Assembly: GCA_025594325.1 (NCBI GenBank)
Contig: JANHCV010000002.1
Span: 2,170,001 to 2,234,000 of the forward strand
Length of the DNA stretch: 64,000 nucleotides
Direction of reading: 5' to 3'
Origin: Blastocladiella emersonii ATCC 22665
Taxonomy: Eukaryota > Fungi > Blastocladiomycota
Shown: piece after piece, positions 7,646-15,200 of the stretch
Layout of the letters: every line of letters starts with the position of its first letter
Numbering within the stretch: position 1 is the stretch's first letter
Program-made: the position numbers and the translations under genes
The notes under the pieces: model-generated
Told to the model about the DNA's origin: nothing
Databases searched by the model: none
The model's input: only the letters and a program-made list of their open reading frames with translations

Positions 7646-10600
7646 ATGAACTTGCTCGATCACGCGAGGCGGCCGCGGCCGCCACCACCCCGCCCATGCA
7701 CTGGCGTGCCGCGCCCTCGCCTCACCACCACTTTCGCGGGTGTCCCACTCCTTGCAACATGCATCATTCTTCTCGCACTACTATCCAGCAGCGGCACCGT
7801 CGACGCCGCGGTGCAGTCGCTCGACGGCACCGGCAACAACCCGGTCCCCGCCAAGGCCGCGTGGGGGAGCGTCGGCCAGACGCTGTCCCGCACCTTCGTC
7901 GCGGCCAACAGCTACACGGACGGTGTCGCGGCGCCGCGGTCGTCGCCGAACCCGCGCGAGATCACGCGCTTGCTCTTCGACAACCCGAGCGCGCTGTCCA
8001 ACCTCACGGGCGCCGGCTACGACCAGAAGTGGGCCGCGCTGCTTCCTGTTCTCCACCGGGTTCATTTCACTCCGCTGACCTGCGTCCTGGGAACTCGAAG
8101 ACTGACTCGCTCCCGTGTGTAGCTGCTCGCCATCGACCTCGTCCAGATCTCGGCGAACCCGGCTGAGCCGTACCCGCTCGCGGTCCCCGCGTGTGACACG
8201 GTCTTCGACCCACTGTGCACGGGAACGGCGGCCATCAACTATGCGCGCGCGGCCGGCTCGCTCACGGGGCCGAGCGGGTCCCGGCTCGCGACCAACCTCG
8301 CCACGGCCTACATGGACGCCGGCTTCCTCTACGGTACGCGACCCGCGCGGTTGCTCGCCGTGACCACGAACTGACCCCACTCGCACGCGTAGGCACCAGC
8401 GCGTCGACGCTCCAGTCCATGCGCACCATGACCGGCGGCAAGCTGGCGCTCGACCCCAAGGGGCTGCTGCTCACCAAGACCCTCTCGTCGGCCGTGACGC
8501 TCGGCGAGCTCATCGTCCCGGCGTACCAGCCCGTGTACCTCGCCGGCGACCTGCGCATCAACGCGCACCCGGGCACCATCGCCATCACCACGCTGCTCGC
8601 GCGCGAGCACAACCGCAAGGCCGGCCTGATCCTCGCGCAGAACCCGACCATGTCTGACGAAGAGTGCGCCCCCCGCTTTCGCTGATCACGCGACCCATGT
8701 CGCTAACCGCCTCGACTCGACCGTGTAGCGTGTTCCAGACGGCGCGCCGGTGGACCATCTCGGTGTGGCAGCGGCTCGTCATTGAGGAACTGACGACGAC
8801 CATGCTCGGGTCGACGCTGCCGGGCTTTCCGGGGTACTCGAACACGACGGCGCCCGAGGTCGACTCCTTCTCCGCGAGCTGCCTGCTCCCGATCGGCTAC
8901 CTCGGCAGCGGGTCCGTCGTGTACCGGTACAACGCGGACGGCACCGAGCACGCCGCGGGCCACCTGCACGCGCCGCCGGCGCTCGGCCGGATCCCGTCGT
9001 TTGTCAAGGCCGTCAACGCGAGCGGCATCGAACCGATCCTCATCGGGCTCATGACGTCGCGCGAGCTCCCGCTGCGCGGGGGCGCGCACGGCAACGCGGC
9101 CGATGTCCTTGCCATGCTGGTGCACCGCGCGCGCGACCTCGGCGTCCCAACGTACGCGGCGGCGCGGGCCGCGCTCGGGCTCACGACGCCCACGTCGTTT
9201 GCGTCCATCAGCAGCAACCCCGTGGTGCAGGCGACGCTGGCCAAGATCTACGCGAGCGCGGCCGACGTCGACGCGTGTCTCGGCTCGTGGCTCGAGGACC
9301 CGGTCCCGTACACGCGCGTGGGCACGACGCTCGCGGCGGCGTACTCCAAGACCGTGGCGCTCGCGCGTAACTCGGACTACTTCATCTACCTGTCGCCGAC
9401 GTCGGGCTATGCCACTGCGCAGTCGTACGAGGTGCGCAGGTACGGGTTCGACTACCTGGTCAAGAACAACACGAACCTGGCCCGGTTCCCGCAGTCGATT
9501 GCGAGTCCGGCCGATGCGGCCACGGCCTTCACCAACGTCACGGCGACGACGACCATCAGCCCCGCGGACACGGCGGCGCGCGAGTTCGCGTTCCGGTCGC
9601 GCACGCTCGTCGACGGGCTCAAGCTCAACTGGACGGTCTCCGCGCCGTACCTCAAGATGCAGATCACGACGACGCTCATGGGCTGGATCGCCATCGGGTT
9701 CGGTCTCGGCATGCCCGTCAACATGGACGCCAACATCGTCGTGTACGCGAACGGCGTGCCCGAGGTCGCCGACTACTACACGGTCGGGTACGGCCCGACG
9801 CGCGACACGGCGCGGGGCGGGACCTCGGACATTTCGGGCTTCTCGTGGTCCGACGACCCTGTCTCGGGCGCCCGCACGTTCAAGTGGTCGCGCCTGCTCA
9901 CGTCCACGGACCCGAACGACGCCAACATCACGACGGCGGGCACCCAGATCGTGTTCGCGTACGGCCCGCAGCCGGCGCCCGTGTACCACGCGTCGCGGCG
10001 CGGCTTCGCCTTTATCAACTTCTACGCGCTCGGGCTCGCGCCCGTGCCCACGTCAACGAGTACGCCGACGAGCACCGCCACGGCGACGCCGACGCCCACT
10101 TCCACGGTCACCCCGCCCAAGACGCCCGTTGGGCTCAAGGTGCTGCACGGGCTGCTCATGTACCTGGCCTTCTTTGTCGCGATCCCGTTCGGCATCTTCA
10201 GCGCGCGGCACCTGGCGGCCAAGAACTGGCTCGACATCCACTTCAAGGTCAACCAGTTCGTGTTCTCGAAGACGGCGCTGTCGCTGCTCACGGCGCTGCT
10301 GGGCGACAGCAATGGGTTCATGGACAGCGCGCACGGCGTGTGGGGCATGATCACGACCATCGGGCTCGCGCTGACCATGGCAGGCGGGATGCTGAGCGGG
10401 TTCAACCTCCGCGTCCCGCAGTGGGTCACGTCGATTGCGCGCAAGATGCACGTCCCGATCGCGCTCGCGACGTGGGGCGCGGGGATCTACGACTGCATCA
10501 ACGGCGCCGAGATGATGTCCAAGTACGGCAAGGAGTGGGGCTGGTTCACGTACCTCAACTGGGCCGGGCTCGCGGCGCTCGTCCCCGTGATGCTGTACCT

Positions 10601-12857
10601 CGAGGTCCGCCGCATCAAGTACGGCAAAGTGGCAATGCGGTCGCTCACGCGCATCTCCAAGCTCAAGAAGTCGCTCGCGTCGCGGTCCGGGCTCATCAAC
10701 GACGACGACGGCCACCGCGTCCTCCCCGAGTTCACGTGGACCGCGATCCGCGAGAAGGTCCAGGACGGGCTCATGTGGCTCGTCATTGACGGCGTCGTCT
10801 ACGACGTGTCCAAGTACGCCGAGTCGCACCCGGGCGGCAAGCAGGCGATCCTGCGGTACGTCGGCAGCGACGCCACGGCCGCCTTCAACGGCATGAAGGG
10901 CAGCGCCAGCCACTTCAGCCTGCGGTCCGACGACGGCGGCGAGTCGGACGGCGGCGGCGACCGGTCGCGCACCGCGTCCGTGTCCGGGACCGACACGTCG
11001 GCGGTGGGCCTGCTCCGCCGCCGCATCAGCGTCTTCACGGGCAACAACAACACGTCGAGCGGCAGCGGCAGCGCCAACGGGAGCTCGTCGGCCGGCATGA
11101 TGTCCCTGCGCGCCATGTCGGGCGTCGGCGGCCGGTCGTCCATCTTCTGGCAGAGCGGCACCGTCAAGCGCGTGTACGCGCACGCGCACTCGCGGCTCGC
11201 GCGCCTCAAGCTTAACACGCTGGCCATCGGGTACCTGGCCGACGGCAAGAGCGCCGCGAGCAAGAAAAGCGCGATCATGAGCAGCGCGGCGCTCGAGGGA
11301 CTCGACTTTGAGGAGGGCGACCTCGTCCCGGCGTGGTACCCGCCCGAGCGCAACCCCGGGCTCAGCGAGCTGCAGTTCCGGTCGCTCACCATCGTCAAGC
11401 GCACGCGGCTCACGGCGCCGCCCGCATCGCTGCTGGGTCTCGACGCCACGGCGCTCCAGTCCCCGACCACGGCCGCCAGCGGCGCGTCGGGTCCCGTGTA
11501 TCTGTTCCGTCTCGCGTTCCGGTCGCCGAGCGAGGAGGTGTGGTTCAAGCCGGGCGACAGCGTGGTCCTGCAGCTCCCCGCCGAGGACGGGCGGCAGCTG
11601 CACACGCGCGCGTACACGCCCATCGCGTGCCAGGCGCAGGGGTACCTCGACCTGATCATCCGCGTGTACCCGAACGGCGCCCTCACGCCGCTGCTCGAGC
11701 AGCTCGAGGTGGGTGACGAGGTCAGCGTGCGCGGACCCGACCGGTGCCCGAAGTCGCTGCTCCGGCTCACGCCCGCGCCGCCCGGCCGCCGCGAGGTGAT
11801 CGGCGGCGACGGCGACGGCGCGGCCGCGGCGGGCGCAATGACGCGCGCGCTCGTGGTGCGCGGGCTCGAGATCGACCCCGTCTCGCGCGGGTGCTACGAG
11901 CACGTCGGCCTGATCGCGGCGGGCACGGGCATCACGCCGATGCTCCTGCTCATCGACTACTACGTCAAGCACTGCCCGCGCGACCCGGCGTCGGGCGTCC
12001 CGCTGTCGCGCATCACGCTGCTGTACCAGGCCAAGAACCGCGGCGACCTCGTCTACTACAACGAGCTCGAGGCGCTCGTCGCCACGCACGCGCCGCTCCT
12101 GCGCGTCGTGTACCACCTCTCGCAGGACGACGCGGGCAAGACCGGCGGCGATGCGACCACGCCCCCGCTGACGCCGGCGAGCGGACCCGTGCAGTACCGG
12201 CGCATCGACGCGGACGCGATCCGCCGCGACATGCCGCCGGCGGCGCGCGCGTTCCGGACCACGACGTCCGCACTGGCTTCGGGCCCGCCGTCGCCGCTCC
12301 CCGTCCCGCACCTGTTGGCCGGCCCGATTGTTTCCTCGACACTCGGCCCCATGTCGCTGGCCATGGGCGGCAGCATGTCGTCGGACACGGGCGGGATCGG
12401 CGTGGTGCCGCCGTCGCCCGTGATGCCGCACGTCAACAACGGGTTCCCGACGATCCGCCGCCGCACCTCCGTCAGCTTCGTGGTCCCGACCATCAACCGG
12501 CCCGCGTCGACGGCCGGCGGGCTCGGGACCGACCCGAACGCCATCGGCATGGGCATCCTCAAGACGGCGAGTCTGTCGGGCACGGCCACACCGACGACGA
12601 CGGCCGCGGCAGCAGGCCCGACGACTGGGTCCGCCTCCGTGTCTGGCGCCCTGTCGCCGGCCGGCGGGTCTTCGTCGATCCTGCACCGCGCGCTCACCGA
12701 CACGGCGGGTGCGGGCGTCGCCGCCGCGGCCGCACAGGGCAGCGCCGTCGCTGACGCGATGATGCTGGTGTGCGGGCCGCCCGAGTTCAACTCGAGCGTG
12801 GTCAAGGCGTTGCAGACGCTCGGGTACTCGGGCGACAGCGTCGTGGTGTTGCAGTAG
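7646..12857 (+). CDS. Multidomain membrane redox protein (1674 aa): signal/anchor + degenerate animal-type haem-peroxidase domain + DOMON + cytochrome b561 + cytochrome b5 + FAD/NAD(P)H-binding reductase
   Basis: Introns 8060-8122, 8334-8392 and 8664-8728 give a 5025-nt CDS. Peroxidase-fold motifs: SLDGTGNN, PNPREIT, MDAGFLYG, GDLRIN, AREHNR, RARDLGVPTY. DOMON: GWIAIGFG-GM..MD..YH. Four b561 His: LHG, DIHF, AHG, KMH. b5: IDGVVYDVS..HPGG..HAHS. Reductase: RAYTP, RVYPNGALT, AAGTGITPM, CGPPEF. Confidence 0.88.
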
Positions 12858-13058
12858 TAGTTGGGGGTTGCTTTTTTTGCTCTTCACGTTCGCGAATCTA
12901 TACATTTCCCTAATCCACGCGATGTACAACATATCATATCGCTCATCAGCGGGAGATGAGTGCGTCGCCGAGTGGCCGCCTTGATCACGCCCAGCAGGAA
13001 GAGTTGAGGGTCACGCAACGAGTATGACTATATATGAGCAAATAACCAGCGACTCCGC

Positions 13059-15200
13059 TTACGACTTCCACACGACGCGCATGCGGGGACTGACCCACAC
13101 GAGCTCCTTCTTGCCCGTCGGGGCCGCCGCGACGCCGTTCGCGACCTCAGCCTTGCGCTTCTTGGGCGCGAACGCGGCTGCAGCGCTGGTGGCGAGCGGG
13201 TCCTCGACCTCGACGAGCCCGAGCACGTACAGGAAGACGAGCAGCGGGACACCGACCACAAAGAACGCGATCGAGACGGCCCACCGCTCGGCGAGCTCGA
13301 GGACGCGGACCTGCGCCGTGAGCCCCATGACAGCGGCGGCCGAGACCGCGGGGACGGGCACCGTCGAGAACTCGGGCGCCTTGATCCACGTGATGGGCTC
13401 GCGCGCACGCGTGCCGACGAGGCACGCGGGGAGGAGCCGCGCGACGGACGCGGGCAGGATCCGCGCGAGAGCGACGGGGACGAGGCCCGTGGCGACCTGG
13501 ACCGCCGACATCTCGACCGTGTGCACGGGCGCGCGGGTGGCGGCGGCGGACGCGGCCTTGGCGGCCGACGGCGACGCGGCGAGGTACGGCTCGGGCAGGT
13601 GCGCGGCGAGGTTGGCATGGTACACGTCGGGCGAGGGGAGGAGCGGGAGCTGCGCGAGCGGGACGCCGACCTTGCGGCGCGTCGGATACCCGCCGTTGAG
13701 GGTGAGCGGGAACGGCGGCGAGGCGCCGAGCGCGGCCGCGGCGACGAGGCCGGCGGTGCACCCGTCCTCGTGGAAGCCGTGGTTGCACCACGCGCCGGCG
13801 AAGCCGAGGCCGTTGAGGTTGGCGATGGTCGGGAGCAGGTCCTGCGCCTGCACGAGGTTGAAGCTGTAGATGGGGTGGTCGTAGCTGTACTCGTCGATGA
13901 CGAGCGCCGGGTCGGGCTCGTACAGCGGGTTGATGGTCAGGAACACGTCGCCGTGCGTGTCGCGCGGGATGAAGGGCTGCAGGCGGTTCATCCAGTACGT
14001 GACGCACACGCCGTCCTCGTCCATGGACTCGCCCGAGTCGGCGGGGCCGTTGGCGCCGGTGCGCGTCAGGTAGTTCCACGACGACCACGCGGACCGCGTC
14101 ACGGGCATGAGGGCCGGGTCACGGTGCAGGACCGCGCGGTTCGGCCCGTATGACACCTTGCCGAGCACCTCGGCCTCGGCCGGCGTCAGGTCCTTGATGA
14201 GCGAGCGCGAGATGTCGCCGTGCGTGGCGAGGATGACGTGGTCGAAGGTGGCCTTGTCGCCGCGGTCGTCGGTCACGGTGATCCAGTTGCGGCGGACGCC
14301 GTCCACGGGGCTCGGCGGCGCGGCAAAGTTGCGCGTGATGGACCGGATGCCGCGGTTGAGGTGGACGCGCGGCAGAGAGTCGGAAACCGCGCAGGCATAC
14401 TGGCGGGAGCCGAGGGGAACGGTCAGCCAGTTCGGGCGACCCACGAGCTGCAACATCCGGTGATTTTTGAAGAAGTTGACGAGGGAAATGATGGGGAACG
14501 AGGAAAGGCAGGTCCCTGCGGGCGTGGACCAGATGGCGGCGGTCTGCGGGGTCAGGAAGTTGTCCTTGAACGACTGCGAGTAGTTGCCCTCGGCCAGGAA
14601 CTCGCCGATCGACATCTTCTCGTACTTGGCGTAGAGCGCGGCGGCCGTGGGCGAGGCCGTGGCGGGGCCGGCCGTGATCTCGTCGGCCGCGTCGGCGATG
14701 GCGGCGGCGATCCAGTGGAACCGCATCACGTCGTACAGCATGACCCAGACGCCCTTGCGCGAGAAGTCGAAGACGTTCTTGCGCTGCGCGAACAGCGTGA
14801 AGAGCGTGTCGCCGGCCCACTCGAAGGCGCCGCGGTTGCGCGACACGGCAAACGACATGTCCGACTGCGTGAGCGGCACGCCGACCTTGTCGAGGAAGCG
14901 CATGAAGTTCGGGTACGTGACGGGGTTGCACACGATGAAGCCCGTGTCGACGGGGACCGCCGTCACGGCCGGGTTCGCCGCGTACTCGCGCAGCGGCGGC
15001 ACGTCGACCGTGTGCGTGTGCCCGCCCACGTAGTCCTCGCGCTCGTACACGGTCACGTCGAAGTGCGCCGGGTACTGGTTGAGCAGCCACGCCGCCGACA
15101 GGCCCGCGATCCCGGACCCGACCACGGCGACGCGCAGCGGGGCGCGCGTGTTGGTGCCGCCGGCGTTGCTGCTGCTGGAAGTGGTTGCTGCATTGACCAT
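13059..15200 (-). CDS. FAD-dependent oxidoreductase, amine-oxidase-like / COG2907-type (family associated with cyclopropane-fatty-acid synthases), with C-terminal hydrophobic anchor; intronless, 713 aa
   Basis: VAVVGSGIAGLSAA dinucleotide-binding motif plus PVDTGFIVCNPVTYPNF, SDMSFAV, NRAVLHRD, SAWSSWNY, YWMNRLQ and FAGAWCNHGFHEDG; hydrophobic WAVSIAFFVVGVPLLVFLYVLGL near the C-terminus. Confidence 0.85.
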   Translation of the reverse strand: MVNAATTSSSSNAGGTNTRAPLRVAVVGSGIAGLSAAWLLNQYPAHFDVTVYEREDYVGGHTHTVDVPPLREYAANPAVTAVPVDTGFIVCNPVTYPNFMRFLDKVGVPLTQSDMSFAVSRNRGAFEWAGDTLFTLFAQRKNVFDFSRKGVWVMLYDVMRFHWIAAAIADAADEITAGPATASPTAAALYAKYEKMSIGEFLAEGNYSQSFKDNFLTPQTAAIWSTPAGTCLSSFPIISLVNFFKNHRMLQLVGRPNWLTVPLGSRQYACAVSDSLPRVHLNRGIRSITRNFAAPPSPVDGVRRNWITVTDDRGDKATFDHVILATHGDISRSLIKDLTPAEAEVLGKVSYGPNRAVLHRDPALMPVTRSAWSSWNYLTRTGANGPADSGESMDEDGVCVTYWMNRLQPFIPRDTHGDVFLTINPLYEPDPALVIDEYSYDHPIYSFNLVQAQDLLPTIANLNGLGFAGAWCNHGFHEDGCTAGLVAAAALGASPPFPLTLNGGYPTRRKVGVPLAQLPLLPSPDVYHANLAAHLPEPYLAASPSAAKAASAAATRAPVHTVEMSAVQVATGLVPVALARILPASVARLLPACLVGTRAREPITWIKAPEFSTVPVPAVSAAAVMGLTAQVRVLELAERWAVSIAFFVVGVPLLVFLYVLGLVEVEDPLATSAAAAFAPKKRKAEVANGVAAAPTGKKELVWVSPRMRVVWKS

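Follow-up and report, generated by a model that had tools for sequence, protein, structure and literature searches.

Two designs of protein are known to carry electrons across the plasma membrane. NOX, DUOX and FRE proteins have their own module for reduced nicotinamide adenine dinucleotide phosphate (NADPH) and flavin adenine dinucleotide (FAD), and b561 and CYBDOM proteins run on soluble ascorbate. The NOX haems lie near -225 and -265 mV, potentials that permit reduction of O2, whereas b561 haems and those of the DOMON type, as in cellobiose dehydrogenase (CDH), have six-fold coordination and mid-point potentials between about +50 and +200 mV. In vertebrate DUOX, a haem-poor peroxidase-homology domain probably serves as a structural cap or binding platform; in CDH, the job of the cytochrome domain is electron transfer between proteins. 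The CYBDOMs HYP1 and CRR have been shown experimentally to be trans-membrane Fe(III)/Cu(II) reductases, with a three-haem conduit that is fed by ascorbate, and the source gives the HYP1 ligands as M90, H174, H211, H245, H278 and H314, with M90 and H174 as the proposed DOMON pair (PMC10784544). Here we describe a gene of the early-branching fungus Blastocladiella emersonii ATCC 22665 whose single product joins a peroxidase fold, a DOMON, a b561 membrane core, a cytochrome b5 and a flavoreductase. It lies at positions 7646-12857 (+ strand) of the window, by which we mean the whole stretch of DNA analysed: 64,000 nucleotides of contig JANHCV010000002.1 (assembly GCA_025594325.1, positions 2,170,001 to 2,234,000 of the forward strand). 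The reading that we favour, with moderate confidence, is that of an NAD(P)H-driven, ascorbate-independent ecto-reductase of the CYBDOM type, in which the peroxidase fold is a structural cap or a platform for binding a substrate or partner.

The gene has four exons (7646-8059, 8123-8333, 8393-8663 and 8729-12857) and three GT-AG introns of 63, 59 and 65 nucleotides (8060-8122, 8334-8392 and 8664-8728), each of which starts with GT, ends in TAG and contains a branch-like CTGAC/CTAAC motif. When spliced, the exons give one frame of 1674 codons with a single terminal stop. A sequence-only reading of the window had described five redox modules in one spliced open reading frame (ORF) of this length, and this holds: the four exons share a single frame, and each module is supported by a Pfam hidden Markov model. 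The large fourth exon, of 1375 codons, encodes residues 300-1674 without a stop, comprising the latter half of the peroxidase fold and all modules after it; the translation of this exon is 100% identical to NCBI protein H9P43_002642, which is labelled a hypothetical protein. By our own estimate, an open frame of this size in DNA of 68% GC has a chance probability of about 1e-13. When exon 4 is read in windows of 60 codons, the G+C content of third codon positions (GC3) stays at 0.90-1.00 from end to end, the linkers and both low-complexity inserts included, compared with only 0.5-0.7 in the introns and flanks; the fusion is therefore not an artefact of the gene model, and the inserts are coding. 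In the Allomyces arbusculus and A. javanicus orthologues, which were reconstructed from DNA, introns 1-3 are at identical positions. Exon 2 is 211 nucleotides long in both Blastocladiella and Allomyces, and in Allomyces the junction from b561 to b5 likewise falls inside a single exon.

These results bear on the possibility that the model joins, by read-through, two or three neighbouring genes for a secreted peroxidase-like protein, a CYBDOM and a b5-reductase flavocytochrome, which we regard as extremely unlikely. The locus is known from genomic DNA, the public model and that of the first, sequence-only reading differ at the 5' end, and GC-rich DNA often holds long open frames, for example a 959-residue antisense ORF in this region. 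However, residues 300-1674 occupy one stop-free exon with in-frame GC3 of at least 0.90 through linkers and inserts alike, the Allomyces b561-to-b5 junction is within one exon, the linkers and inserts are under purifying selection, and the same module order recurs in dozens of species, including two Trinity/transcriptome ORFs. The region 7646-12857 is thus confirmed as one real gene for a single-chain protein. Hidden introns in the inserts were ruled out by the full GC3 periodicity and by the low ratio of non-synonymous to synonymous substitution (dN/dS). An alternative donor for intron 1 at 8048 is possible, but the Allomyces alignment is gap-free with the donor at 8060. A search for listed RNA runs gave none. 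Four sequencing runs contain the stretch, all as genomic contigs from the source sample and without splice joints; a single apparent joint, from 10983 to 12238, was disregarded, as it comprises only 20 letters of low-complexity sequence. The Allomyces orthologues have an additional small exon/intron pair in the peroxidase region, and the two Allomyces loci have an extra intron within the b5 insert (9224-9291 in L001 and 4224-4306 in L002).

The membrane conduit begins with the DOMON (9594..10046, + strand; Pfam DOMON, 46.5 bits), which is predicted to be extracellular. Its candidate haem ligands are Met627 in the motif GLGMP (9702-9716) and His719 in the motif VYHAS (9981-9995); these are M594 and H686 in P0001, whose numbering plus 33 gives that of the 1674-residue model. 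Each is present in at least 90% of the 39 family members compared. In an AlphaFold2 (AF2) model of the DOMON-b561-b5 part, built with 39 family sequences, the domain is a beta sandwich with a predicted local distance difference test (pLDDT) score above 90, and Foldseek matches it at probability 1.0 to the DOMON of dopamine beta-hydroxylase and to the cytochrome domain of CDH. A Thr/Ser/Pro-rich linker, PTSTSTPTSTATATPTPTSTVT (10047..10112, + strand; pLDDT below 50), leads from the DOMON to the membrane. The cytochrome b561 core that follows (10113..10631, + strand) has five transmembrane (TM) helices and four haem-ligand histidines, H772, H803, H834 and H873, the codons of which lie within 10137-10154, 10230-10247, 10323-10340 and 10440-10457.

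Considered by itself, the Pfam call for the b561 core is weak (Cytochrom_B561, 23.7 bits versus a cut-off of 23); 26 of the 39 members match this Pfam family, and a search of the PDB with the single DOMON-b561 sequence returned no match. The assignment is secured at the level of the family. Three of the histidines (H739, H770 and H801 in P0001) are invariant among the 39 members and the fourth (H840) is kept in at least 90%, while all four are invariant in an alignment of 29 b561 domains. The family profile aligns them to H50, H86, H120 and H159 of human Dcytb (5zle, E 6e-7 to 7.5e-10). The AF2 model contains the five helices at pLDDT of about 90 or above, and Foldseek matches this part to 4o6y and 5zle, in each case at probability 1.0.

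Submitted to Foldseek as one unit, the DOMON and b561 together match the CYBDOMs HYP1 (At5g35735) and CRR (At3g25290) of Arabidopsis and animal FRRS1/SDR2, with E from 1e-11 to 1e-14. As in those proteins, a Met/His DOMON on the extracytosolic side lies directly N-terminal to a b561 domain with its four His on four consecutive TM helices, giving a conduit of three haems, and the ligand spacing resembles that of HYP1 as listed above. By every testable feature this unit is a CYBDOM member. There are also clear differences. Sequence similarity is low, and only the family profile reaches the solved b561 structures; CYBDOMs have no peroxidase-fold domain; and their donor is free cytosolic ascorbate (PMC10784544), while the conduit here carries a fused cytochrome b5 and NAD(P)H flavoreductase at its cytosolic end.

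The cytochrome b5 (10704..11261, + strand) matches Pfam Cyt-b5 with 62 bits over profile positions 1-55. Its first ligand is in HPGG (10827-10838) and its second in HAHS (11184-11195), with a Ser/Gly-rich loop insert of about 90 residues between them (10893-11171; GC3 1.00). The HAHSRLARLKLNTLAIG block, which holds the second ligand, is conserved after the insert in Allomyces and in P0004, the B. emersonii paralogue; HAHS and the helix after it are conserved in Allomyces, P0004 and P0013. Other family members have the same b5 loop with a different insert or with none. Foldseek matches this part of the model to cytochrome b5 at probability 1.0, so that HPGG, the second His and the b5 fold are all present. 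With the DOMON and b561 ligands located above, this bears out the claim, made from the sequence alone, that the haem ligands of the three cytochrome modules are intact, and they are conserved in the family.

The b5 is followed by an FAD-binding domain of the b5-reductase type (11349..11741, + strand; FAD_binding_6, 49.8 bits) with the motif RAYTP at 11607-11621, whose best PDB matches are the NADH-cytochrome b5 reductases 2eix and 7rom. The NAD(P)H-binding domain (11889..12857 including the stop codon, + strand; NAD_binding_1, 37.4 bits) has GTGITP at 11922-11939 and CGPP at 12771-12782, preceded by a low-complexity insert of about 200 residues (12123-12731; GC3 0.90-0.97). The reductase aligns to 2eix in three collinear stretches, the C-terminal CGPP block included. 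Both Pfam domains and the motifs RAYTP, GTGITP and VCGPP are therefore those of a b5-reductase/FNR-like module. Among solved structures the reductase is best matched by b5 reductases, nitrate reductase and CYB5R4, and the order of b5 before an FAD/NADH b5-reductase in one chain is that of Ncb5or (CYB5R4) and of the C-terminal half of eukaryotic nitrate reductase, where it allows transfer from flavin to haem within the molecule. Those proteins, however, are soluble, with cytosolic or molybdenum partners, and here the unit is tethered to a trans-membrane b561; in addition, no CS domain was detected, and the large inserts in the b5 loop and the NAD domain are particular to the present protein in this comparison. 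Two short basic motifs were observed in the inserts. RRRTSVSF (12456-12479) in the NAD insert is conserved as RRR(T/P)SVSF within otherwise poorly conserved sequence (RRRPSVSF in Allomyces), and RRRIS occurs in the b5 insert (11016-11033). RRxS recurs in the inserts of P0004, P0007, P0008, P0012, P0013 and P0019, at a frequency that by our own estimate is not clearly above chance. The motifs hint at possible regulation by a kinase of the protein kinase A (PKA)/AGC type.

At the other end of the chain, the start codon and a signal peptide or signal anchor occupy 7646..7807 (+ strand). The leader has an Arg/Pro-rich n-region, a hydrophobic core at residues 28-46 (Kyte-Doolittle peak 2.24) and a likely cleavage site, VDA|A, directly before the DGTGNN that starts the peroxidase fold. 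Equivalent leaders stand just before the DG(T/S)GNN motif in Allomyces, in the paralogue P0004 and in most family members. The public model H9P43_002642 starts instead at 7696 in a different frame, with an extra intron of 49 nucleotides and without a leader; we consider the ATG at 7646 the better start. The roughly 45 leader codons have a GC3 of about 0.65, compared with 0.93-1.00 in the rest of the gene, which is an oddity, and no coding signal for an upstream leader exon was seen between about 6560 and 7780. The ectodomain contains seven N-x-S/T sequons and a conserved Cys pair. With the N-terminus outside and five TM helices, the b5 and reductase would be cytosolic. Sequence features and the structure model thus support a predicted topology with the peroxidase fold and DOMON outside and the b5 and reductase inside, and the succession of leader, ecto peroxidase/DOMON, five TM helices and cytosolic b5 and reductase fits an electron chain, as had been suggested.

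The ectodomain proper is a peroxidase fold (7808..9566, + strand, interrupted by introns 1-3), found by Pfam An_peroxidase in three exon pieces of 28, 52 and 90 bits. In a phmmer search of the PDB, its match to 8s6c covers residues 24-486, about 460 residues (E 1.4e-55), which establishes homology to the PF03098 fold of animal haem peroxidases (peroxidase-cyclooxygenase superfamily); further matches were Dictyostelium peroxinectin A (6erc, 1.1e-35) and the peroxidase-homology domain of DUOX1 (7d3e, 1.9e-28; 6wxr, 2.9e-27). The likeness to secreted haem peroxidases such as 8s6c (deposited as 'Lactoperoxidase') and 6erc is thus one of fold, while the distal His, the proximal His and the ester-forming Glu have been lost here and the domain is fused to a membrane wire. 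The catalytic positions were read in a HMMER alignment to 8s6c and a MAFFT alignment of 109 peroxidase domains, and both confirm the loss of the catalytic set that the sequence-only reading had noticed. In place of WGQF(L/I)xHD, the distal motif is LHRLLAIDL (8051-8140, spanning intron 1), without the distal His; the same position reads LLYLDL in Allomyces and LVYYDL in P0004. The GDxRxNE motif is GDLRINAHP (8545-8571), in which the catalytic Arg is kept and the haem-linking Glu is replaced by Ala (Lys in Allomyces, Arg in P0004). Instead of FR(F/Y)GH, the proximal motif is LLPIGY (8883-8900), without the proximal His; at this point the present protein has LPIGY, Allomyces LRLGT and P0004 SRFFL. 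Conservation persists in the Cys pair, in the Arg of GDxRxN and at some of the Ca-site residues. Two residues in the vicinity of the lost ligand positions, His104 (two turns upstream) and Tyr323 in P0001 numbering, were considered as substitute haem ligands and rejected as poor candidates, since neither is conserved in Allomyces or P0004; His104 is Asn in relatives.

Although it has lost its haem ligands, the domain is under strong purifying selection. Rates were calculated by the Nei-Gojobori method for the A. arbusculus and A. javanicus orthologues (overall dS 0.45). The peroxidase fold (515 codons) has a dN/dS of 0.075, as constrained as the redox modules: 0.147 in the DOMON, 0.049 in b561, 0.022 in the b5 core and 0.043 in the FAD/NAD module. 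The b5 insert (0.07) and the NAD-domain insert (0.16) were calculated in the same way. A domain that is constrained like the redox modules is a functional pseudo-enzyme and not a decaying relic.

The build of the whole protein invites comparison with DUOX, and the sequence-only reading had spoken of DUOX logic realised with different parts. By analogy of build this stands: in each case one chain starts with a peroxidase-homology domain outside the cell, continues through a membrane core of two haems and ends in a flavin/NAD(P)H domain. By descent it does not, since the membrane core (b561 versus the NOX ferric-reductase domain) and the flavin module (b5-reductase plus b5 versus NOX) are unrelated. 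A Pfam scan for NOX/DUOX features gave no match to PF01794, PF08022 or an EF-hand, and NAD_binding_6 reached 17.3 bits versus a cut-off of 22.2. There is no extra TM helix after the peroxidase domain here, and there are two additional haem domains, the DOMON and the b5. The protein is a DUOX analogue only.

The parallel nevertheless raises the question of whether the outer end, like that of DUOX, could reduce O2 to superoxide or H2O2 for signalling, cross-linking of the wall or cyst, or defence, with the dead peroxidase domain shaping or releasing the product as in vertebrate DUOX. The DUOX-parallel arrangement of ectodomain, di-haem core and flavin/NAD(P)H module speaks for such a source of reactive oxygen species (ROS), as do the DUOX1 peroxidase-homology domain among the best solved ectodomain matches (7d3e, 6wxr) and the fact that, as in DUOX, the haem ligands are kept in some members and lost in others. 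However, the membrane core is a b561 and not a NOX ferric-reductase domain, and b561 and DOMON haems are generally six-coordinate with positive potentials, in contrast to the very negative NOX haems. The chemistry to be expected is then reduction of an acceptor other than O2, and the characterised CYBDOMs reduce metals and not O2 (PMC10784544). Because of the difference in haem potentials we rate a ROS source below an ecto-reductase, and consider it unlikely. Of the two outputs that had been offered from the sequence, reductase or ROS source, the NAD(P)H ecto-reductase is therefore the one we favour and the other is weakened.

With the ligands for four b-haems intact (one in b5, two in b561 and one in the DOMON), and with intact FAD and NAD(P)H motifs, the ecto-reductase would work as follows. 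Inside the cell, the b5-reductase-type module would take a hydride from NAD(P)H onto FAD, with NADH thought likelier than NADPH, and the FAD would hand single electrons to the fused cytochrome b5. The fusion of b5 and reductase to the conduit suggests a replacement for ascorbate: the b5 would stand in for it by reducing the b561 haem on the cytosolic side (the His803/His873 pair, by analogy with HYP1). From there the electron would cross to the outer b561 haem (His772/His834) and pass to the Met/His haem of the DOMON on the outer face. As the peroxidase haem site is gone, the DOMON haem would be the exit, which is why an ecto-reductase is favoured; the wire would end there in the present protein and likewise in the paralogue and the Allomyces orthologues. 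Possible one-electron acceptors at the outer end are Fe(III) or Cu(II) chelates and organic radicals, and the protein would then be a CYBDOM that is self-sufficient. The dead peroxidase fold would serve as a cap or docking surface; it is kept under strong purifying selection, and so is probably a structural cap or a platform for binding a substrate or partner. Cofactor loading, the acceptor, what the dead domain does, and the direction and continuity of electron transfer are inferred, the downhill path from NAD(P)H to the DOMON haem from established properties of these protein families.

Several points weigh against this account. The gene model at this locus is drawn from genomic DNA, and its 5' end is tentative, because the leader codons lack the GC3 bias and the public start differs. 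The inserts of about 90 residues in b5 and about 200 in the NAD domain could impair or gate cofactor binding. Some residual haem binding by the peroxidase fold is possible, given His104 and Tyr323 near the lost ligand positions. Finally, our literature searches found no precedent for docking of a b5 onto a b561.

The conserved dead fold can also be read as a docking or substrate-binding surface in a different arrangement, in which the DOMON haem delivers electrons to a separate secreted enzyme, such as a live haem peroxidase or a copper enzyme of the lytic polysaccharide monooxygenase (LPMO) type. That the haem-less domain is under strong purifying selection (dN/dS 0.075) implies that it still has a part to play in binding or structure, and the DOMON fold matches the cytochrome domain of CDH. 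That protein similarly uses a DOMON-like Met/His cytochrome as a built-in shuttle from a flavin to an external acceptor, although CDH is wholly secreted and fuelled by sugar, and has neither a membrane passage nor b5 and b561. Relatives with a live peroxidase further suggest that the wire first served a peroxidase haem. On the other hand, our analysis yielded no candidate for the partner enzyme, and the gene neighbourhood is not conserved between Blastocladiella and Allomyces; delivery to a separate enzyme thus appears improbable.

More doubtful still is a role as a redox sensor or receptor, in which the dead peroxidase would bind an external ligand or peroxide while phosphorylatable cytosolic inserts gate a small reporting flux. 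The RRR(T/P)SVSF motif conserved in the NAD insert, the RRRIS of the b5 insert and the constraint on both inserts would suit such a role. But the RRxS motifs in the inserts of the family are not clearly commoner than chance, the Pfam scan revealed no signalling domain, and the fact that all cofactor ligands are conserved points to the importance of catalytic electron flow. Of the two roles originally suggested for the dead peroxidase, a scaffold in the form of a cap or platform is accordingly probable in view of its dN/dS, and a sensor very unlikely.

The ecto-reductase proposed for Blastocladiella belongs to a larger family. An exhaustive HMMER search of 1.84 billion cluster representatives gave 6076 matches, and among the best 150 of these 6076 at least 45 clusters (at 50% identity) have their modules arranged as here: peroxidase, DOMON and/or b561, b5 and FAD/NAD. 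The Blastocladiomycota contribute a second B. emersonii copy (H9P43_010108), Allomyces and two Sorochytrium copies. Members from Chytridiomycota are in Cladochytrium, Spizellomyces, Entophlyctis, Chytriomyces, Phlyctochytrium, Thoreauomyces, Borealophlyctis, Polychytrium, Nowakowskiella and Boothiomyces; others are found in Rigifila ramosa (CRuMs) and in the stramenopiles Platysulcus tardus and Discosporangium, a brown alga. The entries for Rigifila and Platysulcus are transcriptome ORFs, so in these two the fusion is seen on single transcripts. Members are named in the databases as 'hypothetical protein', 'heme peroxidase' or 'Peroxidase mlt-7', and full-text literature searches found no published description of the combined architecture. 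The architecture is therefore that of a widespread family for which we found no characterised member; the earlier statement that no characterised protein is built in this way agrees with the literature, but the protein is not a one-off.

Nor is the dead peroxidase a feature of the whole family. Many members have the full catalytic set, with GQF(L/I)AHD, GD(I/V)RANEN and FRYGHS; Sorochytrium, Cladochytrium and Spizellomyces are among those that keep the distal His, Arg, Glu and proximal His. Trees were calculated with FastTree (43 rows) and, for a 24-row subset, with IQ-TREE (LG+G4). In both, the four haem-less proteins (the present one, its paralogue and two from Allomyces) form one clade with 100% SH-type support, nested in a larger clade (99%) together with the live members from Sorochytrium and Cladochytrium. 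A single change explains the dead state, since the haem-less proteins form one clade among live ones. On these trees the pseudo-peroxidase is a derived state of the Blastocladiella and Allomyces lineage, older than the duplication that gave the paralogue. The description of a dead peroxidase thus applies to this protein and its clade and not to the family.

Two other groups of sequences depart from the usual ligand set. On the IQ-TREE tree of the subset, the dead clade has as its sister the environmental sequence P0026 (1235 residues), in which the distal His, Arg and Glu are present and Asn stands at the position of the proximal His; it may represent an intermediate step in the loss of haem binding. 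In a subclade of 15 clusters the distal His is shifted by one residue and the Arg and Glu are lost, while the proximal His is kept. The shifted-His subclade is well supported for P0013, P0014, P0015, P0020, P0021, P0023, P0024 and P0028 (W-G-x-x-L-H-L-D, with the His one residue earlier) and is composed of chytrids and environmental sequences. It may have a haem domain with different chemistry.

As other members keep the catalytic residues, the original logic of the family probably involved a live ecto-peroxidase. In such members the same wire would re-reduce compound I/II of the peroxidase and so act as a trans-membrane NAD(P)H peroxidase, which is more plausible than the making of H2O2 because b561 and DOMON haem potentials are positive. 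We tentatively extend this to the family as a whole, with appreciable doubt: it could be a convergent counterpart of DUOX that wires NAD(P)H through FAD and four b-haems to an extracellular haem peroxidase, its live members being the first peroxidases to draw on NAD(P)H across a membrane. In that case these live members would consume external H2O2 with an internal reductant, and all members would be the first b561 proteins to need no ascorbate. The proteins of Blastocladiella and Allomyces would then amount to a natural experiment, with loss of the terminal haem and re-use of the enzyme as an ecto-reductase with a pseudo-enzyme cap.

Set beside the two known designs of trans-plasma-membrane electron transport, the family would represent a third, a b561/DOMON conduit with its own NAD(P)H-FAD-b5 feeder and a peroxidase cap that is live or dead according to lineage. 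If the chain works as its parts suggest, it shows that b561 can be driven without ascorbate, and that a 'peroxidase on top of a membrane electron pump' has had a second, independent origin. Live and dead pairs (Sorochytrium/Cladochytrium versus Blastocladiella/Allomyces) would allow the role of the haem-less domain to be asked about, as for vertebrate DUOX. Chytrids include pathogens of amphibians and crops, and the family may bear on iron and copper uptake or on the handling of peroxide in their wall-less zoospores.

Other searches and features can be mentioned briefly. A word-indexed protein search with the b561-b5 junction returned only the query itself, and one with the family alignment returned one unrelated short b5 protein; in both, low-complexity words are suspected of having swamped the candidates. 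The ESM-Atlas provided two tentative leads among feature-based neighbours. One is a ciliate cluster (about 995 residues) that has DOMON, Cyt-b5 and FAD_binding_6 and lacks the peroxidase; the other, from Mucoromycota (about 328 residues), has b561 and Cyt-b5. If these are real, the coupling of b561 to b5 would be older and more modular than the peroxidase-capped family. Near the wire gene, an intronless, flavoprotein-like ORF of 713 residues (13059-15200, - strand) lies tail-to-tail with it about 200 nucleotides downstream; it is not in the same position at Allomyces locus L001, and there is thus no conserved linkage between the two. The 959-residue antisense ORF (10053-12932, - strand) opposite exon 4 is not a gene but a by-product of the extreme GC3 bias, and several further long out-of-frame ORFs in the region have the same origin.

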